This document shows positions 32,301 to 56,100 of a stretch of DNA of 64,000 nucleotides, one piece after another. Where the stretch lies: contig OZ316898.1 of assembly GCA_973895155.1 (NCBI GenBank), positions 20,037,292-20,101,291 on the forward strand. The letters run 5' to 3'. Position 1 is the first letter of the stretch, and each line of letters opens with the position of its first letter. The notes beneath the pieces are model-generated. The model saw only the letters and a program-made list of their open reading frames with translations, did not search any database and had not been told where the DNA came from. A program made the position numbers and the translations under genes. The stretch is from Marsupella aquatica (Eukaryota > Plantae > Marchantiophyta).

Positions 32301-33567
32301 TCCCTGCTCTTCTCCATCTGGTCCCTGCTCTGCTTCACTTGGTCCTTGCTCTGCTTCACCTGGTCTTTGCTCTAGTCTTTGCTCTGGTCCCTGCTCTTGT
32401 CCTTGCTCTGCTTCATCTGCATTTAGATTTCTTTCTTCATTATCTCCCTCGCTATCATCTTTGTCTTTAGGCTCTCCCTCAAAGCATGTGATGTTGATGT
32501 TCTCATCATCATTTTCATTGTCACCATCCTCCTTCTCCTCATCTGGATCCTCCTGAATGGCTTCATTTATTGTATTTGGTTTAATTTTCACTTTTCTCTC
32601 TGTAACATTGTCTGAGGCCTATCTTTTTGCTCCTCTAAGTATATTTTTCTCCACTTCTTTTCCCCTTCTTGACCTTCTTTCAAGCCGATCCAATACTTGA
32701 GTTTCAAAGGAATCATGATGCCTTTTCTTTCGTAACTTGTCACCTTTTGAGGATTCATTTGTGCTCTCCCCCTCGCCATTGCTTTCATTTTCCTTTCCGT
32801 GAGGATCTCCCTCATTTCCTTCGGATTGAGAGTAGTTCATCTTTTTCGTGGATGTTCCAAAAGGTTGGTGCTCTGGGTTTTCCTCTGAGCTTGATAAAAA
32901 TGTATCACCATCATTTCCTGTTTCTTCATTTACATTACTTCCAACACCTACATCAAGATTATTAAAGATAATTGCAATCAGAAGTAATATTAAAAAAACT
33001 CATAGACCATGGGTTCTAGACTCCCAAAGGACATGGATCAACCAATTCATTAAAAGTGGAAAATTATCAATGCTTTGGAATATTGCTTATCTCTATTTAG
33101 AATATTATAAAACCAAAATTGGAATTTAAATACCCAATTTTTGGAATTTCTTGACACACATTTTTGAATTTTTTTCATGATTTGTAATATTTGTTTATGA
33201 ATATATCAAAGTCAAAATACCTAGAAGTATTTACAATCCATGAACCTTGTATCATCCAAGACATTCTAAAGTGAAGTCAATTTTTTTGGGGGAAAGGGGG
33301 GGGGGGGCATAAAGCCTCAATACCACACAAAGAGAAGTCATTGACATACGTAATATATATTTTAAATAAATAAAATCCAAAATTGAAATGACATAAGTAC
33401 CCTAATTACCTTGCCTAATCAATTTTAGACGCAGTGCCAAGCAAGCAAAACATAAGAGTAGATTACCAACCTAAAAAATAAGTCATCTTTATACTTTTGA
33501 TAGTATAGACTTAACAACTAATTGAATCTATATAATCCTACTAAGCAAATGATATCACTCTCAATAT

Positions 33568-36500
33568 CTACCTTTGCTCTTCTATATCTATCCTTGCTAA
33601 ATAAACTTTGATTTCCTCCAGTTTCTTTTTGGGGATTTGAATGCCTTGTTAAGCTTTATTCCCTTGATATGTCCAAAAGTGCATGGCTGCTGTTGCATTA
33701 CACCATTCTTCTTTCTGCAAAATATCACATTCCCAAAGTTTTTGCTTCTTCAAACATCCTTCATATCGATCATACAATGATCTATCCTTTTTGGTGCTTT
33801 TGGGTCTCCACCATTGCAACAGAAAATCTCCACAATTTGGTAGTTCAGGGTCCATTTGAACTTTGCTCAATGCTCTTCCCATCCAGAAGCATCCTGGCTT
33901 GTTATCCTCAAATTCTTGTGTTGGATGAATAATGATGAAAACGCCTGCTTCAATATCTTCAAGAGGAACAAACCGATTGCTTTCCCTTTCAGAAAGAGGA
34001 CCCACAAATATTGTTTGACCTTCAAGAATTTCCTCATCAGCCTCACGTTGAAGGATAACAATATCTGGAGGATTCTCCCAACCCGTCACATCAAATGATC
34101 CAAGATCACTTTTATAGCCCGTACCATGTTTGGTTCGAGGCCAAAACCCATCCACCAGCGGCTGCTCTTCAATATCCACTATCTCCAAAAGGGGCTTTTG
34201 CAAAAGCTCAGTAACTGTCTTCCAATATTGCACTAAAGGAAACCTTTCCTTATATCCCTGTGAGGTCTTATCCTTCCATGTTTTCTCTATCCACTCTATA
34301 TAGTTTTTGATGTAGGCTGAAACATCTTTGGCTTTCTGAAAAAGTGTAGTTGGGATTTTGGCAAGTGGTTCTCCAATTGGAAGGACAAGTGTTTTACTTC
34401 CATCTTCAACCCATATGCATCGTCCTTGGGGTGGTGACCATGAGTCATTGATATTCTCCTTGACTTGGTACACAGGGACATTATTTTTCATTGTAAATAG
34501 GAATGCCATTGGTGCAGAGTGCCCTGCAATAGTCTTCACAAAAGCACTAACATAAGACTTGTAGCTAGCCACTTCATGGATCAATGTGGGCACTGGGTGA
34601 ATTGCTTCGTTTTCCCATACCTCTGCCATAAGTGAAAGTAGGGTTGTGACCTCACGATGCTTAAGTCGAGTGCTTACCCTAGAGAATATTGCATCAACAT
34701 CCTCATGTGTATGCCCAACCATAAGGAAAGACATGACAATACTCTCAAAGTGTCCCCTCAGAACCAACTCACTACCGAATGCCATCATGGCCCAATTCTT
34801 GTTGTCCTTTGCAGAGTTGTCCATTTGTAAGTGTAGATGTCTTGGCAATTTCTTGAACAGTGTAGTGCTACTACTATGACATTCTGCCAATCCGCTTGCC
34901 ACAATTGGTGAGACACAATCCTTGTCCACAAGTTCCCCACGATATCGATCAGTTATGACATTGTTGGCATCTAGATATCCAATTTGAAAAGCTTGCTTTT
35001 CCAATAATGCCTTGAATAAGGGGTTTGTTGCCTGATGAGAATGAACTCCAAGATCTCCACTTTTATCCCCCGAATATGCTTCCAAATCACGCAGGCACTT
35101 TGCAACGAAGGTAATAGTAAAATCTGGATCAGATGGCCACATCCCTGTCAAACTAAAGTGGGCAAAGACCCCAGGTTCCCGACCATGTGTCAACATCCCA
35201 GTCAAAGCCATTGGTAGTGGTTGACATCCACTAGCCATGCTTTTTAGTGTATCAACCATTTTAGGAATTTGGGTCTTGTTTTGATCCATCTTATCATGAA
35301 TAATGCAAAGAAGATCTTCTGGATTTCTTCTTGCCATCACCCGAGCTGCATAGTAAAGGTTTCGACGAGACATTTGTTCTTGCATGTGTTTTTCCCTTGC
35401 TGCTTCGTACCGCTCGCGAACTTCAGTTCTTCTCTCCTTCATCAACAACTCCTTCAAAGTGGTGCATTGAGTGCACTTTGCAAAAGCACTCTTCACATGG
35501 AATGAAAAATTTGCATAGTTCTCCCTCCACATCTTATAGAAAGACCCAATGGTAATTCCCTGACTCTCTTCCACCTTCATGCTCTCAACTACCTCATCAT
35601 AGATAACATCTTTGTTATAGCAAGATGGTAATCTGTAGATGATGTTTGATGTTCCCTTCTTCCCTGTGTATCTGAGATGTGGCATAGGCTCGCCAAGGGT
35701 ATTCACTACACGGTCAAGATGAGCACGAAACTCTTGTGTTGTCATCCTTGGTTTTTTGGTGCCCTTATTGCCATGAAACCCCACTTTACAACCACCCTTG
35801 TATAGATTCTCATAGTTGTAGAAGGTGCTTGTAGAAATTCCAAATATAATTGCAAATGCCATTTTGCAAATGATGCGACCTTTGACAACCATTTGTCCTT
35901 GCTCAACCATAGATCTCTCCCTCATTTCAAACACATTCATCATATGACTGATTTTGTTATCATTGTCCAAACCATAGAACTCAGTTCTGACCTCTTCAAT
36001 GTCTGTGCGGGGGAAGTTCCGACAACATTCCATTCCACACTTGCACTTCTTCATGCCCACTTGAGCTATTTTGTTCTCATCCACCTTCACACTTCTTCTC
36101 TGCTTCACTCTTTTTTCTTGGCGTGCATTTGGGTTGGCTGGTTTTCTCAACCCGCCCATGGAATAATGCCTTTTCTTTTGCTGGTACTCCATAGAAGAGA
36201 ACAAATCATCCTCATCATTATCCCCCTCTTTATGTACAGTCTGTTCATCCTCAAGTTCTGACAGAAGATCTCCAAAAAACTTGTCAGAAGGATAGAATTT
36301 CAAAGTTGCAATCGGCCATTTTACCAAGCACGGGGTTCCCACTAAAAATGTGGGAAATTCCTTCTGTTGCATGTGGATATTGCAAATCACACGTTCAACT
36401 AGCACCCCAACATGACCATCACCAAGCACTTCATTGTTTATTGCTGCTGTGGGTTGCCATGCTATGATTGATCCTCTTGCAAGCAATGTCACCCGATCAA

Positions 36501-37290
36501 CAGTATAAATCTCCACATCTTTTAAGTACCACTTGGAATGATCATTCAAATCGTAGTTGTCATCTGGTCCTTGGCTGAGTCCGCCATTTTGAATCTCAAT
36601 CGATTCACACCCATTGAATTGCTCACCAACATTATATACATTGACTATATCCCAAAGAACAACACTACCTACAGACTGCTCAATTGTCTTTATGTTAGTG
36701 TTGGGGTATGGCAATTGAGTCACCCCATGAAGTGCTTCAACCACATGGACACTAATATGCCCTGGTCCCAATAATATGTCACCACAAGTATCCTCTGGTT
36801 GAGTATTAGAAACTTCACCCCGTGCAACAACAATGCTTGTAAGTTGCAATAGCACATCATCTCCTGAACAAAATGGTGCAACCGGTTCATTGTTGGAATT
36901 GGGGACTTGGTTTCCAACAATCCTTGAATCATCAGTTCCTTCAAGTCTCACAAGGTTGGGAGTATCATTGGATGCTTTTTGGACCTGCAATGGGATGTTC
37001 TCATTTGCCAAAATGGCACTAGCACAGTCCCATATAACATATGAATGTAAAGCCTCCCCAGTGGTGTCAGCTCCTGGATTTGGGTAAGGAAGAGGTTTTG
37101 TTGGCTCAAAGATTTCAACCACCAGAACACTCATGCGGTTGTTACCCAATGCCTCAGAATGACAAGTGTCTTCTGGATTGGTCTTAAACACAACCCCCCT
37201 TGCAACCAATATATTCTCAAGATGAAGAAGTACTTCAGACCCTTGGGAGAACAAAAAATTGGCACTCCGAGTTGTAGTCATGATCTGCAT
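33568..37290 (-). CDS. Sola-type DDD transposase (DUF7869-like core), 1213-aa ORF; likely premature TAA at 33649-33651 with the natural stop at 33568
   Basis: Motifs CKCGMECC, FYKMW, AKCTQCTTLK, CIIHDKMDQNK, LHLQMDNSAKDNKN, SFLMVGHTHEDVDAIFS. The frame continues past the TAA as QGIQIPKKKLEEIKVYLARIDIEEQR*. A splice acceptor at ~37285 implies upstream exon(s). Confidence 0.85.
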
Positions 37291-37352: not shown

Positions 37353-40300
37353 GAAACCTCAATATCATCGTGAGGTTTCAGGCTACTTGGATACTAAAGT
37401 GAAATTCATCCAGACACTAAACCTAGTTTTTGTGGTTAAACTTAATATGGTCCTATGCAAGTGCTTAACATGCATAGTTGGGTCAACTTTGCATTAAAAA
37501 GTCCATTATGTAGGTATAAGGCAATAATGTTAGAAATAATAGTGGTCTAGAAGGTCCGCAAGTAATTATACGGATGTGGACTGACAGAATGTTAGACTAC
37601 AATATGTTTGCGGCAATACATTCACAAGACCTACTAAGAGATTCAATTTAACCCAAAAGAATGAGAATTATTGGTCATAAAATAAAGTACAGTAGAACTT
37701 CACGATTGTCATGAGGTTTCATTTCTTGCTTCAAGAAGACTGAATTATGAATAAATGAATGAGAACAAAATGAAGTACCTATTCATCACTGTTAGATCCA
37801 TTCACTATTTTCTCTTAATGTTGATATTAATAGTTTAGTCCATGTAACTTCCATATGAATGATGGACACACACAGGAAAACTTACAACCTCAAGATGATC
37901 TTGAGGATGACAATTTATGCCTCTATATCTCAATGAACAAAACAAAACATATGTAGACCTATGTCATATTGAGCTTGGCCAAGTATGCAAATTGATGGTC
38001 ATAATTAGTTACTTTTAGTGCACAAGACAAAAATAAAGCTAAAGACTCACAAATGACTTAAACAAAGTAAAAGAAACATACCCAAAATTCAGAATCATAA
38101 ATGTCTTTGCCGCATGTGGCGAAGATAGAGTATAAGAGTGCCACCATGCGTCCTCATCAATTAGAAGACGCCCAAATGTTCATCAAACGTCAGTTCAGAC
38201 TCAACTGCAGTGTCAACATTGTCCACCATGATCTAAGAGAGTTAGAGTAGGAGGAGGGTCTTTTCATTGGTTAAATGAAGGAAAATGCTTAGACTTCCCT
38301 CAAGAAATAGTTGTAGAAAAGTGGGCACAAATAGAGAATGCAAAAGTGTGAGTAGCAGAAAAGAAAAATAAACAACTCTGAAACTGAAGTAAAATGAACA
38401 TGGGGAAGTGTTGGGCTGGGTTTGCAAATATATCTTTGAGAGCAACGGATCAGCGTGAGATGGATTGACTAATGTTGCTGAGTTTGAGTTTATTGGCGAA
38501 GACTCATTGGCCCCAGGTTTGGAGGGAATTGTCAGCTTTCATCAATAAGAATAAAGAAAAAACAAAGTTGCTTAGCACATTTTTAATATTTAAAGAATGA
38601 CGACAGACCTTTTGCTTTTGCATGCTGGATTTGTCCTCCTATATACTGTAGAGCTCTGTATTTACATGGAATCAAACGGGAGTTTCAAAAATCCTTACTA
38701 TTCATTCTGTTTTTTTAATTTTCCACTCATTGGCCCAGTTTTGGAGGGATTCGTCGACTAGCTCGCATTAATAGACTCCAAGTAAACGACATTTGCTCAA
38801 CACATATTAATTTTTAAAAATATGATGACTGAGGGACATTTTGCGATTTTTCCTCCATTATTGTACAGACTAGTGTATTTGCACGATGAGGAACCTTGTA
38901 GTAAGAATTTTTGTGTTTTTGAAATTTGAAAATTTTCAGGTTTTCCTTGTGGCTAAGTATTTTGGCTTGTTGACTTGCAATAACAAGCCGCCATCCATTT
39001 CTTAGTACTTTTTCTCCTTTTAGCAACGCTTGTTGGCCCATTGGCCTCACCAACTTCACCAACTTCTTGGACATTACTTGATTTTAGTGGAGTAGTTGGA
39101 GTTGGCATTTTTTTGCCATGGTCAAGTGTAAATCTCTCAATATTTTTTTAGAGGCCCCAAAATATGGATTTAAATTTTTGGCCAAAGACGAATGTAAATT
39201 TGACACAGTTACATTAGAGTTGTTAGGATTTGGTACCAAATAATTAGCCATATATAGATGCATGCGGTATAAGGTGTCATGTGACTTACTAAGTGTCAGC
39301 TCCGTGTGAAGAGGAGAAGGCGGCTAGAGTTGGCGGAAGTTCGATTGGGAAGTTATCAGGGGTACTTTACCAAAGAAAACTCTGTCGTTTGTTGAGGCCC
39401 TGAAAACTCATTTGTTGAGGCCCTAGCTGCCAAGAAGAGGATGATTCGTAGTGTGAGGACATCCGTAGCAAGAGCGCATGCAGGGCGTTTTTAGTGGAAG
39501 GTGAAAGGCTGTGAGGACGGCCATAGCAAGAGCGCATGCAGGGTATTTTTAGTGGAAGGTGAAAGGCTAGCAGGCGCTATTGCTGGCACGCCCTAGTATT
39601 GCTTGCAGGCCCTTGTGAGGGATCAGCCGCAAGACTTCTCCTTGTTCATGCTCACATATCTATTTAAACTCAAAATTCTCTGGACTCATTCCTCAGAATT
39701 GTGTACATCGTACGTGAGGGAGGACTATTCAAGTTAGCTACAGTACCTCTGTCATAACTGTCTGCACAATCACCAAGGTACCAACAGTTAGTGTTTATGT
39801 GGAATAGTGGAGTAGATTCCTGTTGTACTAAAGGTGCCTATTCATTAGTGTTTTCTGTATTGCTGGTAGCTACATGTGCCTTGCTCAGGCCAGACAATCC
39901 CTCTACTGTACGCATGACTGGTGAAGGAGGTGCGTATCTCATTGTCCTTATCTTATCTTGGGTTGTTATCTTATTATCTTCTTTCTCAATTGAACGTGAA
40001 CTAATGGGTGTCATGAGTCTCCTTACTGGCTCAATGCGCTTTCTCATTTGTATTTGATAAGTTTCGTGACCGGTTCAATACGCATGCGCGCTTATTATCA
40101 GAGTATGCTCTGAGGAGATTGAGTTGCATTGTATTGTTTAGGGTTTGAGTTGCTAAATTAGAAACGATGAGTTTCATGACTGGTTCAATACGAATGCACG
40201 CTTATTATCAGAGTATGCTCTGAGGAGATTGAGTTGCATTGTATTGTTTAGGGTTTGAGTTGCTAAATTAGAAACTTTGATTGAGTTTTGGTATACCAGA

Positions 40301-43300
40301 ATGAGCAAGTTTAGAGTATCTGCAAAGAATCTTTTAAGATTCTTTGATAGGTGCACGGCTTTGGCATGGCTAAGCCCAAGAAAGATCTGGTAATGATGAT
40401 AAAGCAAGCACATGTTGGGCTTTCAGGTACTTTTCATTTTCCAACCTTGCTACTTCTGTTATTTTGGCATGTATTTTTTGACATTGTCATGTTTTTTGCT
40501 TGTTAACCTCACGATCGTCGTGAGGTTTGACTATTCTAATGCTTGATTAAAGTTAGAATTTCAATTTTTTTTACTTGTTAACCTCATGATCATCGTGAGG
40601 TTTCTACATTTTCTTGCTTGACTAACTAAGATGAGGAAAGTCATTTCTACTTGCCTAACCTCATGATGATCGTGAGGTGAAGGGTCATCATTTCATGGCT
40701 TCATGAGAGGGTGAAGGACATTTTTTCTTTTCAACCTCACAATGGTGATGATCAAGGTTTCAAATTTTCATGCATGGATAGAGAATAGTAACATCTTTTT
40801 TCTGTGGATCACCTTCAGATATTTGTGAGGATTAGGGTCTTTTTTATGGTTTGGCAATAGGTTCAAGGATATTTTTGCTTGGAAAAGCTCACTATCATTG
40901 TGAAGTTTAGCCATATTTTCATGGTTTGGTGAGAGGTCAAGGAGAGTGTCAAGAATATTTTTGTTGGCAGCAAACCTCACAATTGTTGTTTCATTTCATA
41001 TTTATTTGCATGGTTTGGTTCAAGGGTTGAGCTCATGTTTTGTCATTTTTATGCTTCCATAGAAATTGTCAAGTTCTATTTTGCTTGCCAAAACCTCACG
41101 ATTATCGTGAGGTTTGCTCATTTCTGCATCATTCCACCTAGTTTATTCTCAAGAATTGGATCTGTTCATTTAATTAATGGACTTCACTTGTTTATTGTGC
41201 AAATGATTACCATGATTTGGACCCAGTATCTGAACCAAAAATTTGTGATAATGATGTATGTTTAACATACAACTATGACATTGGAGAAGAGTGGGCAATT
41301 GATATGTACCCTTACGATGGAGAAGTTCAATTGTGTTTGATTGACATAAAAAAAGATCCACACTGAATGCGACAGCACATTGTTGGTCCAATTGCATACT
41401 TGCAAATGCATTCTGAGGATCAAGTAATTGTTCTTGTAGAGAATTACACGGAAAAAAATGGTATCAGTACTTGCTTGATGCAAATACATATTGAGTGCGG
41501 TTGAATACAACTTGGATTGATGATATGCCAACCAATGTTATTTCTTTGGCATTCTTTCCTTTGGACTTTAGTTTCAAAGGTAGTTCAGATCAAGGACAAC
41601 TTTCACACCAGGAGATTGCATCTGGTTATGCTCAAGTCTTACATTTACTGAAAAGAAGGAAGCATTTCTTGTGTAGGACATTGTAGATGGAGCAGTGCAT
41701 TGAGACAAGTGGACTAACCAACATTGATATTGATCCAGCTGTTCTTTTCCATAAACTTTGGTTGCAAACAAGGTGAAGGAAGTGCCAAAGTCTTTAGAAG
41801 ATGACTTGGGAGTAGATATGTCAGAATATGAAGGGGCCAAGGCTGACGAAGAAGCGGTACCAATCATTGATCCCAGTAGAGAGGCATCTCCACAACAAAG
41901 TGAGAAGCTTGATAGTGTAGAGCCTCAAATTCAGAGCATTCTTGGAATTGTCCAACAAAAGAAGAAACAAGCTACCAAGCTTGTAGTTTCTCAGCCAAAG
42001 AGACGACCGCCAACCACCAAGGCACAAAATGTGCAGAGGAAGAGAAAATAGCCACAAGAAGAGGACAACGTGGAAGAGATTTTTGCACAACAAAGTGAAA
42101 GGATTGAGCCCATTGTACTTCAAATAGGAGGCAATGTACAGAGCAAGCCAACAATTGTGCAACCAAAGAGAAAGCCATCAACAAGAAAGAAGTCATTGAG
42201 GAAGCAACCAGATAGCAATAGGGATACAGTTGTTGATCTTGTGCAATAAGGAGCACTAATCTTACGAGAAGTGGATGACAATGAAGAGAGTGAGTTACCT
42301 GGAGCCAAAGAGATTGAAAAATCTAACAAGATTTTGCAAGAGATGAAAGATTACTATCCTTTTGGAATTATAACACATTTTGGGATTCTGGTGAAGAATA
42401 TCACGCAACCTCCTGCTATCATGTGTTATAGGAAAATTAACCTTTCTCATGTTGATGAGATAATGACTGGGATGATCTTGCATCCCGAGCAGCAACCTCA
42501 TCCTGCTGATTTAGTTCCCTACAACCCTCAGACCTTGAAGCCAATGAGTTTTGCAAAAGATGACATGACTCAATTTCAGAAATTGATGCCAAGGTTAAAG
42601 TTCTTTGCTATAAGTGGACAGCACTCTGCACTTGCCGCTCAAAGAATCTGTGAGCATGCCAAAAAACAACCTGATCTTCGAGAGCTTGCAAATAAATTGC
42701 AAGTACGTTCATCTCGCATTTTTAGTGGAGCTACACCAAAAAAGATCTTGCTGGAGTTCTCTAGTAGCTCAAATGAGATGAACAAGATTTCTGATTATAA
42801 ATCTCCATTCATTGATACTGTGGAGCATGCAAGAAATCAGTACGCTGATTTTGGTTTTCCAAAATGGCCTAAGGCGGGACAAACAGCAAGTCCAATTTAC
42901 AAGGTAAATTTTCCTTGCATAAAAGGTTTAAGTTTTTTGTACTGTGTTATTTTTCTGAATCATGAATGCAATGCCTAACTAACAACCTCACAATGATCGT
43001 GAGGTCAACTACTCATATTGAAAAGATATAGTTTGTTTTGACATGTGCAGGAATTTGAGCATACAGCAAAAATGACCATGGAGAAGAAACATCTTACTGA
43101 AGTACATTGGATACTTTTTACATCTGAGAAGTTGTATTGTTTGTGGAAGGAAGTGTGTAACAAGTGGCTTGAGGGAGAGCTTCCAGAGGGAGACTGAAAA
43201 TAAAAAAGAGTCTAAGCTTCTAACAGTTTCAAATTTCCGGAGTTTGGAGGGAGGCTTGCAAGATGATGATATCATAGCCATTCTCAAAGAGGTCGAACAT

Positions 43301-45290
43301 GGTGAAGTTCTCCTTAAGAAAGATGCTTCTTACAAAGGTGACATGCAATCTATGGAAGAGCTTGCCAAAACAACAAAAGTTCTCTCCAAACTGAAGGAGA
43401 TAATTATTGGATATTATCAAATCACTTTTTCAGACCATTTTCCTGATAAATGTACTTGGAAGGAACTATGTGATAAAATTCCCATTGATGCTAGGGAATT
43501 GGATAGATGCAGAGGAGTGGCTGGTACCAAGTACTTGATATCTTGTACTTCTCGAAATATTGCACGTGAGAAAAATATTCCGCATGGTTTAGTATCAAGA
43601 CTAAATCAACTATTTTATGATGCGTTCGGTGGAAGCCAGAGAAAGAGATTAGAGCCATTTCTAACTTTTTTCACTGACAACTTAATGACAACATGTGAGC
43701 GTGGTGCTTTGGAAGAGGTAGCTCCTTTTGTTCCTCTTGCCATTGTGGATTTTGGAAAACAAAACCAAAAAGAGTGGTCAGTATCCCAGTTGGAGGTGTT
43801 TTTTAAGTACATTGTGGAAACACCAAAAAATGATGCAATAATGATTATCATTTTTTTATTCCATGGTCATCTTTACTCCAATGTGCTAACTGCACTTTAC
43901 AATTTGCCCGATATTCACTTACATTTTGAATTTGGATCATTTGAGAGAGCCGATGGCTACATACATCCTGGGAGGTTTTTCAAAAATGAGCGGGAACAAA
44001 TAATTATTGCAGGTATATAAATTTGAAATTTGTGTTTGGGTTTGGGTTTATGATACATTGAGAAAACCTCACAATGATCGTGAGGTTTAGAATTATCACT
44101 AATTGTAGAATCTATATTTATTTGAACTTAGTAAGTTTACTGATCATTTAGTGTTTTTGGCAGCCATTTCACACAGTGCAAAACAAGATTGGGTTGACAT
44201 GTTTCCTGAAGGAGATATGAACTACCAATTTGATGAGGAAAATGATCGAGATTACCTTTCCAAAACTTGGAAGACTAATCCAAAATCTATTCCAGTGGAT
44301 GAGTCTAAAGAAGATCGAGAGGAACGCTTGAGGGAAGAAGCATTCAAGATGCTAAAAAATAGAGCTCCTCGTTATTCATTTTTGGATCAACTTGGAGGTT
44401 TAGTTAATCCTGATTGCAAGCCTGCTTGTGTGCTCAACAACATCATTCATAAATTTTCGGCACGTGGCGCTACAATTTTTGATTTCTTTTTTGGAGGATC
44501 AGTTTTGAAAAGTGCATTTGAGCTTGGAAGAGAATGCTTTGTGTATTCAGACTAAAAAAGAGAGTCTGAATTCTTGAAATTATATCCAAATATTTTGAGA
44601 ACAATTCCTAGAGTTAACAAATTTTGGGAGAAGGTTGGAAAAATCAATCGTGGTGATCCTCCTGAAGATTCAGAAATTATTGTTGAGTATGTAATTATTG
44701 ATGATAATGACGAAGATGAAGATCTTTCTAGATTTGAGGAAGGGTTGCCTGTTGTTGGTATTCCACAGGATAATCAATATCAAGCTTCTGTTTTGATTGA
44801 AAAAATCTTACAATCTTCAAGTTTGAACAAATCTTCATCAACAATGAGAAGCCAAAATGATTTGATTAACCTTGCAAGTCCTTCACAGGTAAACATCTAT
44901 TCTTCATTTTATTTGTAGTTTACTTATGAGGTATTTATATATATGTGAATATAATCTTATGTTGGAATTGTTGGGTCAAAATAGACCAATGCTTGCAGGA
45001 ATGAAGAAATTACAAGTATTGTTGAAACTGAGACTATGGAGGTAGTTGAAATAGAGCTGGAGGATATCAAATTAGGCCAGGCAGGTTCTTCTCAAAATGA
45101 GAATACTGAAAATTAAATACTTTATGTACCAGGTAGCAACTTATATTAGATGATAATTTGAATTCAAGCATGGATCATGCTTGCCATTTGAGAAACATGC
45201 TCATCTCCTTGAAAAGACAAGTATATATATGTACTTTTTATTGACTTCAGATTTTTCACTGATGCAAACCTCATGATTATCGTGAGGTTT
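37353..45290. promoter_or_regulatory. Dispersed 23-25-bp palindrome AACCTCAC-N7-GTGAGGTT, ~11 copies, non-coding positions only; function inferred
   Basis: Copies at ~37353, 37696, 37886, 40505, 40580, 40657, 40733, 41091, 42984, 44064 and 45266. The last three are in introns. Confidence 0.6.
40062..40275. repeat. 2 x ~110-bp tandem duplication
   Basis: tttc.tgac.ggttcaatacg.atgc.cgcttattatcagagtatgctctgaggagattgagttgcattg...gctaaattagaaac occurs twice. Confidence 0.9.
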
Positions 45291-46721
45291 ATGAGTGATA
45301 TTTGTACCCCAAATATGTACACAAAAGCTTGTATTTAAAAAATGCTAATACGATTATTCCTTTGAATGATTGTATCAGCCAACTATCATAAGCATTTCTC
45401 ACAATGAAATGTCACCACTTGACAATTTACAAGAAGAAGTAGGACGAAATGATTCATATTCAGACACAAGAGTACCTAGAATTGTATCTATTGAGTCACC
45501 CCTTTGGAGTGATTCATCACCTGAAGAAGGATTGTCTGTTGGAATATTTCCATTAGCACCAAAAGGTAAATATTTTGTTATCTTTTATCTGTGTTCATAT
45601 TTATATAGGATTTTGAAATTAGTTATTGTACATTTATTTTACAAAGTTCTAATTTATTTGTAATTGCATTTGTAACAGGTCAACACGATCTTGATCCATG
45701 TCACGTTTGGTCTTACCTGCCAGAAAATATAGCCCGAGATCGTAAATTACTAATTTTTGATCTTAGTGGTTTATTTTTCCGATCGCAATATCTCGGAAAA
45801 ACAATATGCACCAAGTCAATATCAACGGCAACTATGCACACATGACATGGTAACATGTGGACAATAAGACCACAAATTCATGAATTTTTGCAAAAGTGTT
45901 TCTCAAAGTTTGACATAGGAATATGGAGTTGTGGAACTGATCAAGAAGTCCAGATTCAAGTCAAGACTATCTTTGGACCCAAAAAAATTAAAAAATTTCT
46001 TTTTATCAAAAATCAACATCATGTTCAAGAAATTCTTGGGCTCAAGAATAGCAAAGGTGGACCTGTGTTTTTGAAGAACATATCAAAGTTCATTTGGGAA
46101 GAACATAGGTATTGGGATGACAAGACCACTGTGTTGATAGATGACTTACCTTATAGAACTTCAACAAATGCTTCTCATTCAACGTTATTTCCACCTACAT
46201 ATGATGGAAATCAAAAAGACAATTTTCTTTTGAAAATTTTATGGCCTTGTTTGGAAAAAATGGAAATGGCCTGTGATATCCGTGCATATCTTCAATTAAA
46301 TGAGCCAAAATGGTCCATGGAGAGTGCATCTCAAGATGAGATAATCAATGCTCATATCTATCTTTAGCTTCAAAGAAGAGGTCTTTTGAAAAAGTTTACA
46401 CCGCCATAGATGATCAAATACGCTGATGTTTTGCACATTTCTCAATACGAGATCAACTGGGGCCAGAAGCACTTGGTCACCAATATGGGAGCTGTTGATA
46501 AAATGAGTTATGAAGAGGTTTGCAAGATTGGAAAACATCTTGGAATGCGCGGTTGGCATACTGATCATGCTTATGATCTCATACGGTTTTTGTCGTTGGT
46601 TCAAATGACACGAGATCTTTCTTCAAAATTTAAAAACTTGCGTACTCGAGATGGTTGTAATCATGATAGAGAAGTAGATAGGCAGGGAAAATTAGGAACA
46701 TGCTCAAATAAGCATTGTTGA
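41687..46721 (+). pseudogene. Multi-exon cargo gene: ParB/Srx-like domain + beta-class N4C/N6A DNA-methyltransferase-like domain + acidic linker + FCP1/NIF phosphatase; several nonsense/frameshift lesions
   Basis: ParB-like: YRKINLSHVDEI..FFAISGQHSALA (~42430-42640). MTase-like: PLAIVDFG (degenerate motif IV) and VNPDCKPACVLNNIIHKFSARGATIFDFFFGGSVLKSAFELGRECFVY (44401-44550). FCP1-like: RKLLIFDLSGL, RPQIHEFLQKCFSKFDIGIWS, VFLKNI, TVLIDDLPY. GT-AG introns at ~42904-43050, 44012-44163, 44889-44984 and 45566-45678. In-frame stops at 42049, 42247, 44553 and 46365. Confidence 0.8.
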
Positions 46722-47755
46722 GAGTGTCCTTTAGTTCAATTTTCTTCAATCTTGGCCGAGCGCCATTAGATAGAGTAGACAAAGTTCAATGTGCAACTCA
46801 ATTATATATAAATATTTGGTTTCTTTAAAATTTTAAACTTTGTGATTCCCTTGAATGATCTATTTTGACCCTCATTTTGATCATGTAGTGAATAGTAGCA
46901 CTATGTATTTGATTTTCAAACACAACTACGCAAGAAGACTTGTTCATTTGAATGATGTTTCACTAGTACATTTTGAGGCATTTTACCGATTGTATTTAGA
47001 TCGGACGCCTTCAGGAAATCCGACGCGGAAATCTCACCTGTTCGATACCAAAAGAATCGCAATTTCCGATATAAATTTTATCGGAAAATGACAATCAGAA
47101 ACTAATCGGAACTACCGATACCAAAACATTCGGGAGTTCCGTCGCCTAAACTGTCGGGAAACACTATGTCCGATGCCCGCGTAATCGGATGTCTGTTTCA
47201 CGCATTTTTTGTTAGTGGAGGCGTCCGATTCTAGACCGATATTTTGGACATGGAAATGACCGATTGGTTTAACATCGGAAATGTCCGATGTTATTTGGAA
47301 CGGAAATTGCGATTATAGTAGAATCGGACTTTGCGATACGTTTGGGATGGAAAAGTACGATGATTGTGGCATCGGATATGGATCGGTATCTACCCGGAAA
47401 CTATTTGGCGAGCTTGATTGGGCCTATTTTAAATGGGGGGCTAATTGGGGGTTTAATTGGGGTGCAATTTAATTCTTTAACTGAGTTTTTATCTAGGGTT
47501 TAGAGAGGTCATTTAGTCAAGAGAGACTATCAATTTTGATTGCACACTATGTACCTTGAAACCCGGGCATGACACGGCATAACTATATCTTATATACAAA
47601 AATGAAATATCGAGGGCAAAAGTACAAAAAATGGAGAACATCTCCATGCATAGTGCCAGCTATGCTAAAGGCTGGGCATATCAAATGGACATAATGCCCT
47701 CCAACTATCCACCTCGCTAGCCTGGTACTAGATCTATACATGTCTACCTAGTCCA

Positions 47756-50676
47756 CTATCCATACAAGCTATGTCGCGTCTTCCTCTTCTTCACACGGGA
47801 ACGACTAGGCTGCTCTGCTCTATGAGTCTCTACCGCTGACACACCAGGTAGCACATCATGGTCGTGGCTACCTGATCTGCCTCCATCGTCATGTGGATGA
47901 GGTGCAGAAGCAATCTCTGGTACTCCCCCACCTCCAGATGCGCCTGAACCATGGGAAGACACTCCTTCCCCGACACAAGTGTGGAAAGAAGCCCCTCCAG
48001 CACCACCACCACTACCCCCCTCAGGCCGAGTCTCACCTCCACCACTATGACGGGAACCTCCCGACTGGGTGCCTACACCACCACTATGAATAGGATATGG
48101 TGTGGGCACATGACCACCAAGGCCCCCCCCGGACTGTCGCAAACCAGCTGGTACACTACCAGGGCTAGCCCTAAACTGATGAGGTGCAGCAACTCCACCA
48201 CTACCCCCCTCAGGGCGAGACTCACCTCCACCACTATGGCCGGAACCTCCAGACTGGATGCCTACACCACCACTATGAACAGGAGATGGTGTCGGCACAT
48301 GACCACCAAGGCCTCCCCCGGACTGTCGCGAACCAGCTGGTACACTACCAGGGCCAGCCCTAAATTGACGAGGTGCAGCAACTCCACCACTACCCCCCTC
48401 AGGACGAGACTCACCTCCACCACTACGGCCGGAACCTCCAGACTGGATGCCTACACCACCACTATGAACAGGAGATGGTGTGGGCACATGACCACCAAGG
48501 CCTCCCCAGGACTGTCGTGAACCAGCTGGTACACTACCAGGGCCAGCCCTAAACTGACGAGGTGCAACAACTCCACCACTACCCCCCTCAGGGCGAGACT
48601 CACCTCCACCACTACGGCCGGAACCTCCTGACTGGCCAACGACATGACCAGTATGAACACCAGCCCGTTGTCGAGACCCACCTGGTACAACACCAGGGCC
48701 AGTCCTCACTCGACCACCTGCTGTGGCTAGAACTCCAGACTCACTATGAACCCCTCGGTTGTGACCTACTGTGGCTGGAACCCGGGACTCACTCCGTCCA
48801 CTCCTACCGGCTAATCTCTGACAAGAAGGAGGCATATCACCTGCTCTATGCTCCATCCGGCGAGTGGAGCCACCTACACCCCGACCAGACTGGTGATGTC
48901 CACTCTCTCGGGGTCCTGACCGGCCACATGCACCAGTAGAACCTCGTACTGGAGCCTCGGCCACACTCCCCTCTGAAGCACTATCATCCTCCGCATCCTC
49001 CTCATCCTCCTCCCCCTCACCATCCTCCTCACTCTCCAAGTCCTCCTCACCCCCTGACTCATCCTGCACATAGTAACAATCTCCAATCCATATATCATTC
49101 CGCAACATACGTACCAGCATGAAGCCATCTTTCAAATCATTCTAATATCCGCACTTACCGAGGCCAACATGTCGTCCATGTGAATCTTTAGCGCCCGAGC
49201 ACCATGCTCCTTTGCCAGCTCTCTCTCTGCCGGCAACAATGGTCGTCCGTGCTCTTTCTCCTACACACCCAAACCATATGCCACCCCCAATACTAAGGTC
49301 AATTATAGCAACCCTACCCTGGCCTAATTAAACACCTATATAAACCCTTCACCGTCAAAGACCCATAAGAACACTTAGCCGTTCATGCACAAACTATTCA
49401 AAAATTTGAATATGTCCGATACTAATAGAATCGGTACCCTCGACAGTTCCGATTCTTTTTTATTGTCCGATGCTGCATCCGATACTTAGAGGATCGGACT
49501 AGAATCGGACCTTACATGCCGAAAGCAAAAAAAACTAAGGCATGATCGAGCGACCTACGGGCATACAAAGACCTGTCCCGGGTTTGGAAGGGTTAGGCAT
49601 TCGTCAATTGGCCTCAGGTGATTAGGGAGGAGGAATGCTGCTGAAGGAATGCATGGAGAGGAGGGGAATGGAGCACTTACAAAATCGGCCTTGAGACGCT
49701 GTGATCCGCCTTGCCCCATTCTGTGAGTAACCTTTGGCCTCTTTGTTACTCTCAACAGAGCTTTCATTAGCCAGGATGGTGGGTCTCCAAGCAGGGCTGA
49801 TTTTGCTGACCATTCTTCAAGTTCTTGATGCATGGGTGCAGTATTCACCATCTCTCCTTGTTCAATCTTCTTCTGAGCTGCTTGAATTTCAGCTTCCTAG
49901 CGTTGTGTGGCTTGCCAAGCTCGAACCTGCAACTCTTCTTCAAGCCAGGCACACCAAGCATTCTCAGGAATCTCACCAGCTGGGCTTCCCCCTTTCCTGA
50001 TCACCTCCTCATCCAGTTTGCATTCAGCCAGGTACTTTCGCATCTTCTCTCGTACATGATTTCGCATGTCTGCAAGTGAGACTGAGATCTTTTTGTTTAA
50101 GAATCGATCGTCCACAAACGACCCATTCGAAAATCTCTCTTTGATTTGCTCTCGAATTCGAAATCTCTCATCCTGCTTCTTCTTCCCCCAGTAGTCCATC
50201 GGGCCAAAATGAGACCTCACAATCTGCCTAACTTGACTCCCAAACAAACGATAACTCCTGGAGAGTGGAGCACCTCCCTCATTCAGAAACAATTTTGGCC
50301 TCTTGGCCCTATCCTCTGCCTTCTTTCGTTCCTCCTGAATTCTCTGTCGTTCTGCAGCCCGAGCCTCCCTCCTTAGGCTCTTCTCCTTTTGTCTTGGTGA
50401 TAGGGCTTCCACTGGCCTCTCTCTCTCGTCCTCCCTAGTGTTACGTTTCCTCTTCCTCTGCAATCTCTCCTCCTCGAGTCTGGCTTGGAAAGCTTTTTCT
50501 GCATCAGTGATGGCTACCTTCTGGGAGCTGTCGATCAGTCCTTGAGTGAGCTGGGCTACCTGCAATGCAACCTCCGGCGAGAGCCCCACCTTCTCCCTAA
50601 ACAATTGAGCCATGACTTCACCATAGCTGCTTGATGGCCCGACACCATCTCCCATCCCTCCCGCATTCCCTTCCAT
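47756..50676 (-). pseudogene. TnpA/ORF2-like (Ptta/En/Spm Transposase_24-like) gene, exons 50676-49681, 49260-49159, 49063-47756; one in-frame TAG at 49897-49899
   Basis: Phase-0 GT-AG junctions give THRMGQGGSQRLKADF|EKEHGRP, resembling the HxxGxxG...GRxP motif. PAGEIPENAWCAW lies upstream, and the tail is acidic then Gly-rich. Confidence 0.65.
47995..48700 (-). repeat. Coding tandem repeat, 189 bp (63 aa) x ~3.5, Gly/Ser/Pro-rich
   Basis: actacccccctcagg at 48011, 48200, 48389 and 48578. Confidence 0.92.
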
Positions 50677-51741
50677 CGCTATGAGCTCCGCAAAGGTATC
50701 GTGAAATGCTCCCTAAGCTTTTCCCGACTAGAGTGCCTTCGCACTTTAGTCGGGTGACCTAAAAACCCAAAATGCATAACGTCCGATACTTTCTGCATCA
50801 GAAACTCCAATTCTAGGTCAATCGGACTTAGTATCGGACCCCTCCTCCAAAGTATCGGACTTAACCCTCCCAATGTATTTTCTGATGGTTTGTGAATCGC
50901 ATGACCTTGGCATTTGGACTTTGGCATTTGGATCCCATGTATACTATAATGACCCCCTTTATGTTAGTTGGGGGTTAATTATGCTATATTGTGGGCTTAT
51001 TAGGTGTGCGGCGCAAAACGGGCATATCAACGTACAGTTGCCGTGACAAAGCTAGCACACTATTTTTTGGTGGGTATGGATGATCATTGAATGTATGTAC
51101 CCAGATCTATTTTCAGTTTGATTTTAAATGATTCCCATTTTGACCATGAGGCAATGCTATATGCATGGTGCAACTTTTGGGGACTATAAGAAGTCACAAA
51201 TTAAATTAACACTCTAGTGCCGTTTTGTGCAGTTTTGTATTTTTTGTTTTTGGAGGGTCGGGTCGTTGCTTTTCCTTGGTTTTCTTAGTAGGGTTTATTT
51301 TTGCCAATGCATTATGCACAGCGAGAGTACGCGCATCCAAAAGGTATGACATATATGATCCTCCAAAATGTATTGGAAATATTTGACATGATATATGCGT
51401 TACTTGTGGGAGTTTATAATTGGACATCCAACTCGTCATTGATTTTTATTAATTTCATTAATTATTGGTTTGTTACTTAGGTTTGCATGTATGTCATCTC
51501 ATCTTTCAACTTCCCCACCTAGCCTGTATGTGCAGGTTTTTTTGGATTGGCCTTAGCATATAGTCTAAGGCTTAGAGCCTAGTAGGCACTGTAGAGCGCG
51601 GATATCATTCAGGTACTAATTAAGTCCAACACTGCAAATTATTAACATACTATATATTTCCTGTTTGGGTTTACCTCAAGTTAGGGTGATGAATCAATCT
51701 TGCATTTTGGTAAAGACTTGTTTGTGTGTAATTGGCAGACA

Positions 51742-51972
51742 ATGTCGACTTCTGAGAGTTTGGATACAGATTCCGACTCTGACTTGTCTTCCTCTGAGGG
51801 GGACATTCCTCCTCCCCCTCAACAGCCTCGAGCACCCCCTCCATTAGGCCCTATTCCATGCTGGTGTCTTAGATGTAAAGGACTGGTGGTTCGTCAAGCG
51901 TGGCAGTCCATTGAACACATCGAAAACTATGGTCGACATGAGGGTGATTTACCGGGATATTCAGCTCGCCAA
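51742..51972 (+). CDS. First coding exon of the CACTA transposase unit (transposase-associated Cys/His motif)
   Basis: MSTSES...IPCWCLRCKG...IEHIENYG resembles the CPCxxC..H N-terminus of TnpD proteins. Phase-0 donor CAA|GTATTG at 51973. Confidence 0.7.
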
Positions 51973-52082
51973 GTATTGCTTGACATGAACTCCGCTATAT
52001 ATGATGCACTATCATAATAGTTGGCTGGTTTGAGACCTTTTAGGAGACAAGTATTAATTTTTGTTTGTTTATGATTGAATAG

Positions 52083-53045
52083 GTGCGTTGTAGGGCCCGT
52101 CCTCCATTGGTCTCTAGTCAACTATGGCATGATGCATTCCTAGCTGGTGCTAGACAGTTGCTTGCATCATCAGTTGAAGACCCCAAGCAATCATGTACCC
52201 CCGCACATGTTCAGGCAGATGTTGTTCATGAACCCATAGTGGTAGAGTTGGGGCATGGTAGGGATGATGCACCGCCCCCTACTAGGGTTCTACGCACAAG
52301 ACCACGTTCTCATAGACGTCGACAACAGCATGTAGTTCTAGACACAGACCCATCCTATGAGCACTTTAGAAGGAGTGTTATGCCTCCACCAGGGGAGGAG
52401 TACATAGAAGTTGAAGGGAGGTTGGGCTTGTCATATGTGACGGGAAAGGCAATCAGTGTCTTCAAGGATTTTGACCCTGAGAGTTTTGCGATTCCTCGTG
52501 GCCTAGCCATTGACATCCCTGTACATATATGGGGTCGGCAATGGATAGTGAAGGCATCAACCCTTGGCGGGGAGGTTGGGTTAGGCTTATTTGCTTTGGA
52601 GGACATTGAGGTCCCTCCAAAGCCTTGGCGTCGTGGCTATGATGGGGAACACCTTTTCCCTTACATTGGGCCTGTGTATACATCCAAGAGTTGGAACATC
52701 CTCTTGCGCCAACATCCAGCTTGGGGGGTATATGCATTGCAGATGGACTCAGACCCAGATGAGGTCCTAAGGAGGCCTTGGCATTGTAGGATGATTGATG
52801 GGGACCCTGTCCGTTCAGATAACATAGCTGGGTACATCAATAGTACACATGGTAGAGGGAGTGGACTCCAGCCTAATGTAGAGTGGGCTCAGATTTTTGG
52901 CCCACCCACTCCGCCTTACTATGTCACACATATGGATGATCATGTTATGACAGTAGCCATACGGACCATTAGGGCGGGTGATGAGTTTTTTTGTGACTAT
53001 GAATGGAACGCACCCACGATGGGCATTCGATCTGGCCACACTTAG
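52083..53045 (+). CDS. SET-domain lysine methyltransferase-like exon, uninterrupted 320-codon frame
   Basis: VKASTLGGEVGLGLFALEDI, FPYIGPVY, YALQM, IDGDP..NIAGYINS..PNVEW and VAIRTIRAGDEFFCDY follow the SET motif order. Phase-0 acceptor AG at 52081-52082. Confidence 0.85.
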   Translation: MRCRARPPLVSSQLWHDAFLAGARQLLASSVEDPKQSCTPAHVQADVVHEPIVVELGHGRDDAPPPTRVLRTRPRSHRRRQQHVVLDTDPSYEHFRRSVMPPPGEEYIEVEGRLGLSYVTGKAISVFKDFDPESFAIPRGLAIDIPVHIWGRQWIVKASTLGGEVGLGLFALEDIEVPPKPWRRGYDGEHLFPYIGPVYTSKSWNILLRQHPAWGVYALQMDSDPDEVLRRPWHCRMIDGDPVRSDNIAGYINSTHGRGSGLQPNVEWAQIFGPPTPPYYVTHMDDHVMTVAIRTIRAGDEFFCDYEWNAPTMGIRSGHT

Positions 53046-53154
53046 CACATATGTGTATTCCCCATTTTTGAAGTAATATAAGAATATTGTAGTTTTTTTA
53101 GGAACCCATGGGCTAACTCAAACGTATATATCTGTTTTGTGCGTTGTATGATAG

Positions 53155-56100
53155 AATGCATATGTTGAGCCGGATGTTGGGGTGTTACCACGAGCTATGC
53201 GCCAACACCTTGTGCAGGCCATGGAAGATTGGCGACATGCCTCTCTACCACCAGATGGCGATCCGGATGTTCCAGAGCAGGAACCAGATGCCTCCCAATC
53301 AAGAGTTGATGAAGATAGGGCCATGGATGACTTGATGCACCAATTCTATGACATAGAGGATGGTGATCATGACATGGCTGATGGGGAGAATATTGAGGTC
53401 CCACTTCCACATCAAGAAGGTTCAAGGAGTTCAGCCTCCAAACAGTGGGAGGAAGCACGTCAACATGCGCAAACTCGGATATTTGATGGATCACGCTTGT
53501 CTCGTCTTTCAGCAATAATGTTGTTGTTGAACTTGCAGCAAAGACATGGAGCAAGCAACCTACTTCTTGATGATCTCTTTCGGACATTGCATGATTGTAT
53601 CTTGCCAGAAGGAAACAACTTGCCAGACTCTTGGAAAGAGGCAAAGAAGGTGTTGAAGTCCATAGGTCTGCAGTACGAAGTCATACATGCTTGCGTGAAT
53701 GATTGCGTTCTGTTTAGAGGCACTTATAAAGATGCAACGTTATGTCCTACATGTGAGAAGCCTAGGTAACGTGAGGACATGTTGACGGGAAAAGTTCCTC
53801 AGAAGGTCATGAGGTACTTTCCTCTTATACCTCATTTGCGCCACCAATATAGATGTGCTGAGTTGGCTGAGTATATGGTTTGGCATTCCCAAAATCGCTC
53901 AGATATGAGTTCACAACCACCCACCATGCGCATGATGGTTGACTCCCCTGCAAACAAGTTTGTGGAGGAGAGATGGGGTGAGTTCCGAACTGACCCACGT
54001 CATGTTCGCCTAGGATTGGCAGCGGATGGCATCAGCCCATTTGCACTAGCAGGTAAGGCCCAACCATATTCACTATGGCCAGTGGTCCTTACTAATTACA
54101 ACATCCCTCCATGGATGTCCATGAAGAAGGGTCATTTGCTCCTTTTCATGATTATCCCTGGTCCTAAGCAAGTGAAAAAAATTGATGTGTACTTGCAACC
54201 ATTGATTGAGGAGCTACAAAAGCTTTGGAGTGGTGTGGATTGCTATGATGGTCGAGTGCAAACGGGGGGCTTACGTCAAGAATTTAAGTTGAAGGCCATT
54301 CTTATGTGGACCATACATGATCTTCCAGGTATGAATCTTTGTTAAATTATCCCTTCCCATAGCTAGGCAACCGTACCTAGCATACTTTGTTATGTATTGA
54401 GTTAGCTAGAAGCACATATATCTTTTAATAAACTTATTTACTTATGCATGGGATATATATTTATATGCAGGGTTTGGATATATTTCTGGCCTGACCACAT
54501 CAGGATATCGAGCTTGCCCAACTTGTGGACCTGATTTGGAAGGAATAGCGCGGCCAAAGTCAAAGACCTTGAGGAAGATAGTGTATATTGGTCACACCAA
54601 GTACCTCCCTCCAGACCATGATTGGAGGAGAGACCCCTTTTTATATGACACTGAGGATGGCCAACCAGACAGACGACCACAACCTATTCCAAAAGATCCT
54701 GCATATTGGAAAGAGGTATGGGAGAGAGTATCTAATCCAGATGACCCATTGCAATATGCCCGGTGTGGCATGACTTGTTTGTCTGCATTGTCACAACTGC
54801 CTTATTGGGCTGAGATGCCACTTAACCATTTATTTGACCCTATGCACATTGAGGGAAATGTTGGAAGGTCCTTGATTCGCCACCTATATGGAGAGAAAGA
54901 CAACAACTGGAGAGAGAGTTGTGAAGAGATGGGGATGCATGGCCCTCATGGTTTTTGGCCATCTATGGATCCCGATAATGCCCCCCTTACTATTCATCCT
55001 CCTTGGGTTTTGACACGAGGTGAGCGGACCGAGTTTCGCAAACGCATAGGGTCTATGCGATTTCCTACAGGGTATGGTGCCAATCTTCGCAAGGCATTTG
55101 GTGGACTTGACTCTCCAAAATGGCCAGCTTTCTTGAAGACCCATGATTATCATCGCTTATTGCAACATGTTATTCCAATTGCTATTATTGGATTGGGTAG
55201 TGAGGATCTTCGTGATGCCCTTTGGTCGTTGGGTAAGTTGTTGAGATGGGTGTGTCAAAAGGAGGTGAACGAGGATGAGGTTGCAGCAATGGAGGTGTTT
55301 GGAGTGGAGGTTGTGTGCAAACTTGAAAGGGCCCTTCCTCCTTCATTTTTTGATGGTCAGGTTCATTTTCTACTACATCTAGTGCGTGAGGTTGGTATTG
55401 CAGGCCCTGTACATTGTCGTTGGATGTACTGGGTAGAGCGGTACATGGGAGTGATGAAGTCCTATGTTTCAAATCGCGCAAGGGTGGAAGGTAGCATTGC
55501 AGAGCGTCATCTTGGAGCAGAGAGCATGTTTTATTGTACAAACATTATTGCTACACTTGATTCAAATGCTCCAAGCGGGTGGATAGATGAGGCATCAAGA
55601 GAAGCAGACTATGAGGATGACCGTTTGACAGGTGCAAAGGGAGAACGGCTTCTTGACCCTAGTGAGCGCACTAAACTCACTGCATTCATGTTGTATAACT
55701 CTCCAGAGATTGTTGGGGAGTGGACCACATTTTATGAGGAGGATAAGCACAATAGTCGACGACCACGCTTATTTCCCAAATTCCACATGTACATGAAGGG
55801 GAAGTTGTTAGAAGTGGATGCCTTGGTGGCTGTTGGGGAGAGTGTATCACACTTCCCAATGGTGACTGATAAGTTGCGCACCTTGGTTCATGGACCTCTA
55901 CTTACAATTACAACCAGGACTGCCATGTGGTCCAAGGGGAGACACTTTCGTGTGGAACGACTTGATGACAAGAGGGCAGCTACACAAGATTGTGGGGTGA
56001 TGGGTTGGTTCACCCAGGATTCTGTAAGTAGCAGATCTGACACAAATCCCATCCGTTCTACTATAGCTCACTATGGAAAGATAGAGGAGATCCTTGTTGT

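Follow-up and report, generated by a model that had tools for sequence, protein, structure and literature searches.

The closest described counterpart of the system reported here is Sola1-1_Ec32, a 21.5-kb element of the brown alga Ectocarpus that carries, opposite its transposase, a gene for a 1104-aa protein joining a ParB domain to an N4C/N6A methyltransferase (Genome Biol 2025, PMC12477816). The accessory protein is proposed to bind and modify its own element (PMC12477816). The red-algal Plavaka transposons of Bostrychia contain ParB-carrying accessory genes beside inverted-repeat arrays, for which self-binding has likewise been proposed (Petroll et al. 2025, bioRxiv 10.1101/2025.02.11.637652), and Iyer et al. 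described several ParB-linked methyltransferase acquisitions in eukaryotes (PMC4738411). Here we describe a related locus in the liverwort Marsupella aquatica. It lies in a 64,000-nt stretch of contig OZ316898.1 (assembly GCA_973895155.1, positions 20,037,292 to 20,101,291), which we call the window and whose own numbering is used throughout. The stretch under study corresponds to the cargo half of a large cut-and-paste transposon of liverworts, present here as a decayed copy. In the explanation that we favor, and which we consider quite probable as a whole, a decayed Sola1-like element carries two cargo genes, one ParB-like/methylase-like and one NIF/FCP1-like, in a role as binding modules.

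Like Sola1-1_Ec32, the liverwort element is a giant transposon, apparently of Sola1 type, with a ParB-then-methyltransferase gene (~1000-1100 aa) on the strand opposite the transposase. It differs in its host, a liverwort rather than a brown alga, and in the family-wide replacement of methyltransferase motif IV, a comparison made with the published description of the Ectocarpus protein. The liverwort family also has a second cargo gene, encoding a NIF domain, and 25-nt palindromes, neither of which is mentioned for Sola1-1_Ec32 in the available passages of PMC12477816. With PAG2 and PAG3 of the red-algal transposons (superfamily Plavaka/EnSpm), the locus shares a cargo of ParB-like and DNA-modification domains, with inverted-repeat arrays adjoining the ParB-carrying gene. 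The transposon superfamily is a different one, however, and in the PAG proteins ParB is joined to a 2-oxoglutarate (2OG) oxygenase, and a separate protein combines the N6A methylase with SET. An earlier reading of this DNA from its letters alone (the sequence-only reading) had allowed that part of the architecture might be known and had presented its link to private palindromes as possibly new. Novelty is not supported: a ParB plus methyltransferase accessory gene of Sola1 is already known (PMC12477816), a link between ParB and inverted repeats has been proposed for red-algal Plavaka, and the locus is a land-plant case of this published kind of cargo. What may go beyond the published cases is the family-wide loss of the DPPY and DxDxT motifs, the conserved NIF partner and the subfamily-specific palindromes; these features also favor the binding-module role proposed below.

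Host element and cargo genes

The features of the locus are listed in window coordinates.

33037-33061, plus strand: left candidate terminal inverted repeat (TIR), 25 nt, with ATGG directly before it (33033-33036).
33649-37290, minus strand: transposase open reading frame (ORF) with DUF7869, 1213 aa, unbroken, divergent from the cargo gene.
37356-41113, no strand: divergent intergenic region with eight palindrome copies.
41758-42903, plus strand: exon 1 of the ParB-methylase gene, with a basic N-terminal stretch and the predicted ParB/Srx-fold domain (SGQHS); GT donor at 42904.
42904-43050, plus strand: intron 1, 147 nt, phase 0, GT..AG, with a palindrome at 42985-43005.
43051-44012, plus strand: exon 2, with a helical linker and the N-terminal half of the predicted methyltransferase fold; motif IV replaced by VDFG(K).
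44013-44163, plus strand: intron 2, 151 nt, phase 1, with a palindrome at 44066-44086.
44164-44918, plus strand: exon 3, encoding the C-terminal half of the predicted methyltransferase fold and an acidic tail, and closing with the natural TAG stop at 44916-44918.
45268-45288, no strand: palindrome in the gap between the two cargo genes, from the motif count.
45679-46721, plus strand: main exon of the NIF/FCP1-like gene, encoding DLSGL at the DxDxT position, the NIF core and a conserved Cys-rich C-terminal extension.
46961-57231, no strand: nested CACTA/EnSpm element, 10.3 kb, with termini CACTAGTAC... and ...GTACCAGTG, separate from the cargo system.
57235-57484, plus strand: right end of the host element, with a candidate TIR at 57460-57484, then ATGG.

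The two candidate TIRs are 92% complementary over 25 nt and enclose both cargo genes; a 19-mer from them occurs at only two places within the window, in opposite orientation. The ATGG outside either TIR is a candidate 4-bp target-site duplication, seen in the single copy examined, and Sola transposons reportedly follow a 4-bp target-site duplication rule. With its candidate ends at 33037 and 57484, the host element minus the nested insertion measures ~14.2 kb. The transposase ORF matches Pfam DUF7869 (E 8.1e-41), and its nearest Atlas cluster consists of DUF7869 proteins, mostly from Streptophyta (score 0.97). Three features point to a Sola1-like liverwort DNA transposon: the match to DUF7869, the candidate 4-bp duplication and the parallel with Sola1-1_Ec32. 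No transposase match was found in the 10 kb upstream of the related locus L001 in Calypogeia fissa. Summed word depths in the hundreds, in two DNA-like runs, mark the stretch as a repeat; these depths and the position between TIRs led us to drop a reading of the locus as a host gene.

A 19-nt direct repeat, ACTCCCAAARGACATGGAT, is present once on each flank of the host element (33020-33038 and 57495-57513). The element appears to have inserted at a short tandem duplication or in the flank of a further repeat.

The exon structure of the ParB-methylase gene was reconstructed with the help of its relatives. Homology searches were made exon by exon, and an exhaustive search with the exon 43169-44017 returned 47 relatives; a third search, with a full-length family profile, was dominated by low-complexity words and contributed just P0086 and P0087. 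The ORF pieces of exon 1 share one frame, interrupted by in-frame stops at 42049-42051 (TAG) and 42247-42249 (TAA), and the same stretch is contiguous in the Calypogeia fissa protein P0066. The order of the exons is backed by the contiguous relatives P0035 and P0053, and the exon junctions are spanned by P0035 and P0013. In exon 2, an 11-nt deletion at 43190-43192 breaks the frame, in line with a tblastn frame change at ~43191. Removal of intron 2 leaves a junction that is colinear with the relatives in the family alignment. Exon 3 contains a KP motif, DFFFGG (motif I) and RECFVYSD, as well as a premature TAA at 44553-44555. It ends in IYSSFYL* (stop at 44916-44918), which is colinear with EYGSFVKR* of P0053. 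A search of the window for the C-terminal motif HYxWxxGPxxG gave weak matches only; the tail is shortened in the window copy. In P0053 (1009 aa), the ParB part, the helical linker and both methyltransferase halves are contiguous in one ORF, and further long relatives include P0004 (901 aa), P0008 (830 aa) and P0055 (798 aa). The Calypogeia fissa locus L001 is 70-76% identical to the window at the DNA level over the coding parts.

With three in-frame stops and the 11-nt deletion, the ParB-methylase gene of the window copy is dead. The contigs of two DNA-like runs carry a C at 42049 and a C at 44554 (TCA, no stop), as well as the additional letters ACA and GTATCATC at 43190/43192, which restore the frame. 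The dominant copies are therefore free of these three lesions. Intact natural relatives (P0053, P0011, L003 and L004) stand in below for the broken window protein. Contigs from the four DNA-like runs show no splice joints. The sequence-only reading had proposed a comparison of substitution rates across copies. For both cargo genes, the ratio of nonsynonymous to synonymous substitution rates (dN/dS) is 0.08-0.27 between diverged lineages; copies that are 98% identical give ~1.1. Across lineages, purifying selection acts on the family, and single copies, including that of the window, decay.

A ParB-like and methyltransferase-like protein

The N-terminal domain carries an ISGQH block, located in the ORF 42271-42978, within which SGQHS is invariant in 29 relatives. 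We predicted the structure of 42271-42975 with AF2, using an alignment with these 29 relatives, and obtained a model with a mean pLDDT of 84.7. A Foldseek search with this model returned ParB, Noc, PadC, KorB, sulfiredoxin (Srx) or SbnI in all of its ~35 top rows. The best match in VIA-align was Myxococcus xanthus ParB (7bnk), with a Z score of 10.0 and an rmsd of 2.1 Å over 94 residues.

The second conserved block, KPxxL...DFFxGG...GRE, lies in the ORF 44151-44555. This ORF reaches 23.0 bits (E 8.4e-5) against Pfam N6_N4_Mtase (PF01555), below the cut-off of 26.7. The relatives score 18.5-23.5 bits, P0033 alone exceeding the cut-off with 29.2 bits. The beta-class N6A enzyme M.RsrI aligns to the same KP...DFFxGG block, with E 0.006 for the window and E 2.6e-6 for the family profile. 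Given that the methyltransferase domain is split between exons, we modeled the relative P0011 (pLDDT 75.8) rather than the window protein. Residues 167-464 of this model superimpose on CcrM with Z 17.6 (230 residues, rmsd 3.5 Å). All of the top 20 structural matches are beta-class or type III Mod N6A/N4C enzymes (Z 14-17.6), among them M.BceJIV, M.MboIIA, M1.HpyAVI, M.PvuII and M.RsrI (Z 14.6-15.8). The Foldseek E value was 9e-9, and the MT-A70 family scored lower (Z ~10.8). The order of motifs is that of the beta class, with the motif IV region before the target recognition domain, followed by motifs X and I. Based on these predicted structures, the gene encodes a ParB/Srx-fold domain linked to a full methyltransferase fold of the beta class (N6A/N4C type).

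This domain order resembles that of phage and plasmid ParB-methyltransferases, in which a ParB-like N-terminal part precedes a permuted beta-class domain with motif IV before motif I. The fold itself is shared with M.RsrI, CcrM, M.MboIIA and M.PvuII. Unlike these beta-class and phage enzymes, the liverwort protein has no DPPY, its gene has introns, it contains a long helical linker and an acidic C-terminal tail, and its ParB part is devoid of the CTP-binding arginines. A tblastn search of phage records with P0053 gave no match. A prokaryote-type beta-class fold encoded by a eukaryotic gene is also found in bdelloid rotifer N4CMT (PMC8885841), which the model matches structurally with Z 14.2-14.5. 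The rotifer gene belongs to the host, encodes a chromodomain and has demonstrated N4-methylcytosine (4mC) activity, whereas the liverwort gene is transposon cargo with a ParB fusion and no catalytic motif.

In the P0011 model, a strand of sequence LAIVD (199-203) leads directly into DFTR (residue 203) in the position of DPPY, and DFFSGG follows at residue 411. Motif IV reads DF[SATG]R in 20 of 28 relatives and VDFGK in the window. The motif I-like loop is DFFSGG in the relatives and DFFFGG in the window and aligns with DFFAGSG of M.RsrI (FxGxG). Alternatively, the methyltransferase-like domain could be catalytically active through a non-canonical site; it would then place N6-methyladenine (6mA) or 4mC at the palindromes or close to them, or act on another substrate, and so provide the element's own epigenetic mark. 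In favor of this, the fold is preserved in full, with its DFFSGG loop and an acidic residue that follows strand 2; the motif IV Asp is retained in most members; dN/dS lies far below 1; and the Ectocarpus protein is predicted to make 4mC or 6mA (PMC12477816). The pattern (D/N/S)PP(Y/F/W) occurs, however, in none of the 28 members, both prolines and the stacking aromatic residue being gone, and the window and most relatives fall below the Pfam cut-off. Inactive methyltransferase folds are, moreover, known as binding modules. METTL14 is one such inactive fold kept for binding. The DIRS1 methyltransferase has been described in the same terms (PMC4738411). We consider an active enzyme improbable.

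The call of ISGQH as ParB/Srx-like in the sequence-only reading is borne out by the fold match, with the sequence searches of Pfam and the Protein Data Bank (PDB) blank. Its beta-class amino-methyltransferase block agrees with the sub-threshold Pfam score, the M.RsrI alignment and the relative's model. Its observation that DPPY appears as IVDFG is matched by the LAIVD strand placed directly before DFTR, and its suggestion of a perhaps inactive methyltransferase by the motif counts in the 28 relatives.

The NIF-like gene and the private palindromes

The presence of an FCP1-like domain, also noted in the sequence-only reading, is supported by a Pfam NIF (PF03031) match in the ORF 45855-46367 (E 5.6e-13, 49.3 bits against a cut-off of 21.8). 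The corresponding protein of locus L002 matches over profile positions 1-160 (E 2.6e-19, 69.9 bits), and all 30 Atlas neighbors of the NIF-like protein are NIF clusters. The window exon is interrupted by in-frame stops at 45843-45845, 46365-46367 and 46407-46409 and has its natural stop, TGA, at 46719-46721. Its pieces align to intact 361-aa relatives, and the last third (46410-46718) corresponds to a conserved Cys-rich extension. The gene resembles the FCP1/SCP small phosphatases of the RNA polymerase II (Pol II) C-terminal domain (CTD) in that the Pfam NIF match spans the whole domain in the relatives. It differs from them in the replacement of DxDxT, in the additional Cys-rich C-terminal extension and in being transposon-borne. 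The motif reads DLSGL in the window, DCNG(M/L) in L002 and L003, DLNGV in L004 and DLNKV in L006 and L007. Overall this is Dx(N/S)(G/K)x, with the second Asp and the Thr missing, which makes CTD-phosphatase activity doubtful. As judged from the alignments, hallmark catalytic residues have been lost in a conserved manner from both enzyme folds throughout the family.

The two domains read as products of two adjacent cargo genes rather than as parts of one tri-domain fusion. In seven loci (L001-L007), NIF is a separate ORF on the same strand, downstream of a ParB-methylase ORF with its own stop. The gap between them is 167-556 nt in L002, L003, L004, L005 and L007; it is 2.4 kb in L006, where the tail of the first gene lies between, and 7.6 kb in Calypogeia fissa L001, where NIF lies behind an insertion. 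In L002-L007 the ParB-methylase stop falls a few codons past a conserved EYGSF-type motif, and a NIF domain was found in none of the 21 longer ParB-methylase relatives scanned. The sequence-only reading had instead proposed a single spliced protein of ParB, methyltransferase and FCP1 domains, encoded by 41687-46721, that would be loaded onto the element, altering its DNA modification or transcription. In favor of such a fusion, an acceptor-like site is kept before the NIF exon in the window (CAG, 45676-45678), L002 (~3546), L004 (~4493), L007 (~3137) and L005, the NIF exon has no in-frame ATG in five loci, and the two genes are always neighbors on one strand. Yet all full-length relatives stop shortly after the EYGSF-type motif, NIF is absent from every longer relative scanned, and L004 and L006 carry an ATG right before the NIF core. 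The donor-like TTT/GTA past EYGSF in L002 and L003 is in phase 0 and the NIF acceptor in phase 1, so that joining the two would break the frame. A GT is missing from the corresponding place in the window, and AATAAA follows the stop in L002, L003 and L005. We regard a single protein as very unlikely: the stretch 41687-46721 holds two genes, both broken, and the ORF at the proposed start, 41687, has just 29 codons. Of the intronized module proposed in that reading, a transposon-borne ParB-like and prokaryote-type methyltransferase-like protein with introns, transcribed away from the transposase, is supported, and the fusion to FCP1 is not.

Directly past the ParB-methylase stop, the sequence TTAATAAAGATGT is found in L002 (3301-3320), L003 (3767-3790) and L005 (3717-3736). 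Within it are an AATAAA that resembles a poly(A) signal and an ATG; the proteins of these subfamilies share only ~45% identity.

The element also contains a private palindrome of 25 nt, with 10-nt arms AAACCTCACG and a 5-nt loop. There are 11 sites in the window against 0.26 expected by chance, all of them inside the element (37356-45288), in agreement with the link between element and palindromes drawn in the sequence-only reading. The intergenic copies start at 37356, 37697, 37887, 40506, 40581, 40658, 40886 and 41093; three are thus near the transposase start and five upstream of the cargo gene, with one more in each intron and one before NIF. The same palindrome occupies equivalent places, upstream and in intron 1, in Calypogeia fissa L001. 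Distant subfamilies keep the 10+5+10 geometry with a changed sequence, directly upstream of the ParB-methylase gene: three such palindromes at 40-nt spacing in L004 (39-144) and one in L005 (19-43). Such a pattern suggests a joint change of binding site and protein between subfamilies. A different palindromic unit of ~79 nt, GCATGRTGACACTTTTGGCAAATCACTCC..., is present in three copies ~580 nt apart at 27468-28710 and is unrelated to the palindrome of the element.

Alternatively, the palindromes could be subterminal or internal repeats bound by the transposase, or small hairpin insertions, with the cargo acting elsewhere, for example against host silencing. Internal transposase-binding repeats are common in DNA transposons, and three of the palindromes lie less than 600 nt from the transposase start. 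The sites, however, cluster in and around the ParB-methylase gene (introns, 5' region and 3' gap), with none near the TIRs, and it is upstream of this gene that distant subfamilies retain 25-nt palindromes despite their changed sequence. ParB proteins bind palindromes, and a like association is seen for the ParB-carrying PAG3 genes of red algae. On balance, we find this alternative unlikely, somewhat less so than an active methyltransferase.

Proposed role and context

In the mechanism that we propose, the ParB-like/methylase-like protein would be a sequence-specific DNA-binding module that loads on the element's own palindromes, its enzyme folds being used chiefly as scaffolds for binding. 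The phosphatase activity of the NIF-like protein is probably weak or lost, and this protein would dock on a phosphoprotein, for instance the Pol II CTD. The two cargo proteins together would mark the element DNA or organize it, whether for transcription, for transposition or to escape silencing. For this combination of palindrome binding, NIF docking and marking or organizing of element DNA, we judge the case evenly balanced. More tentative, and somewhat doubtful, is the extension to a self-recognition system in which ParB-like/pseudo-methyltransferase, pseudo-phosphatase and palindromes co-evolve with each Sola1 subfamily, two catalytically degenerate folds being used as DNA-binding and phosphoprotein-binding modules through which the element would mark or organize its own copies in land plants.

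Several observations weigh against this explanation or parts of it. The ISGQH ORF gave no match to Pfam ParBc (PF02195) at E up to 1, and phmmer and family-profile searches of the PDB found no ParB chain, returning nothing or low-complexity hits only; the ParB assignment thus rests on predicted structure. The CTP-binding arginines (GERRxRA) are absent, with SGQHS(A) in their place in 29 sequences as positioned by reading the alignment, so ParB-like clamping or spreading is not to be assumed. Loss of DPPY is no proof that all methyltransferase activity is gone, and the binder of the palindromes could be the transposase rather than the ParB-like protein. A phase-1 acceptor (CAG/GT or CAG/AT, the slash marking the junction) is conserved immediately 5' of the NIF core; in the window, L002, L003, L005 and L007 it is followed by no in-frame ATG, which indicates that the NIF gene has a further 5' exon. 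No RNA run containing the stretch was found, and the gene structure is read from DNA alone.

The remaining features of the window are separate from the cargo system. Loose ends of contigs at 46960/46961, the CACTA termini (starting at 46961, and GTACCAGTG at 57223-57231), the continuation of other copies at 57235-57258 and a 3-bp target duplication, TTT (46958-46960 and 57232-57234), together place the CACTA element as an insertion nested in the host element. It contains Pfam Transposase_21, DUF4218 and DUF4216 domains, a SET-domain ORF (52083-53045, Pfam SET E 6e-6) and a Gly/Ser-rich repeat ORF (47756-49135, minus strand). Just beyond the left TIR, two NIF-like fragments (30151-31305, minus strand) are 29-30% identical to the cargo NIF, one of them (30658-31302) matching Pfam NIF with E 7.6e-10, and an acidic ORF of EQGP repeats lies at 32142-32591. 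They may be left over from another element or from a host NIF gene.

With this locus, transposon accessory genes of prokaryotic type, described in brown, red and green algae, are extended to land plants. The cargo package combines a ParB-like/methylase-like gene and a phosphatase-like gene with private palindromes; it is old and under selection, and the conserved loss of both catalytic motifs argues against the published idea of simple self-methylation and points to binding roles. For annotation, this is also a warning: ParB, methylase and NIF domains in liverwort gene sets are to be read as transposon cargo, not as host DNA-methylation genes.

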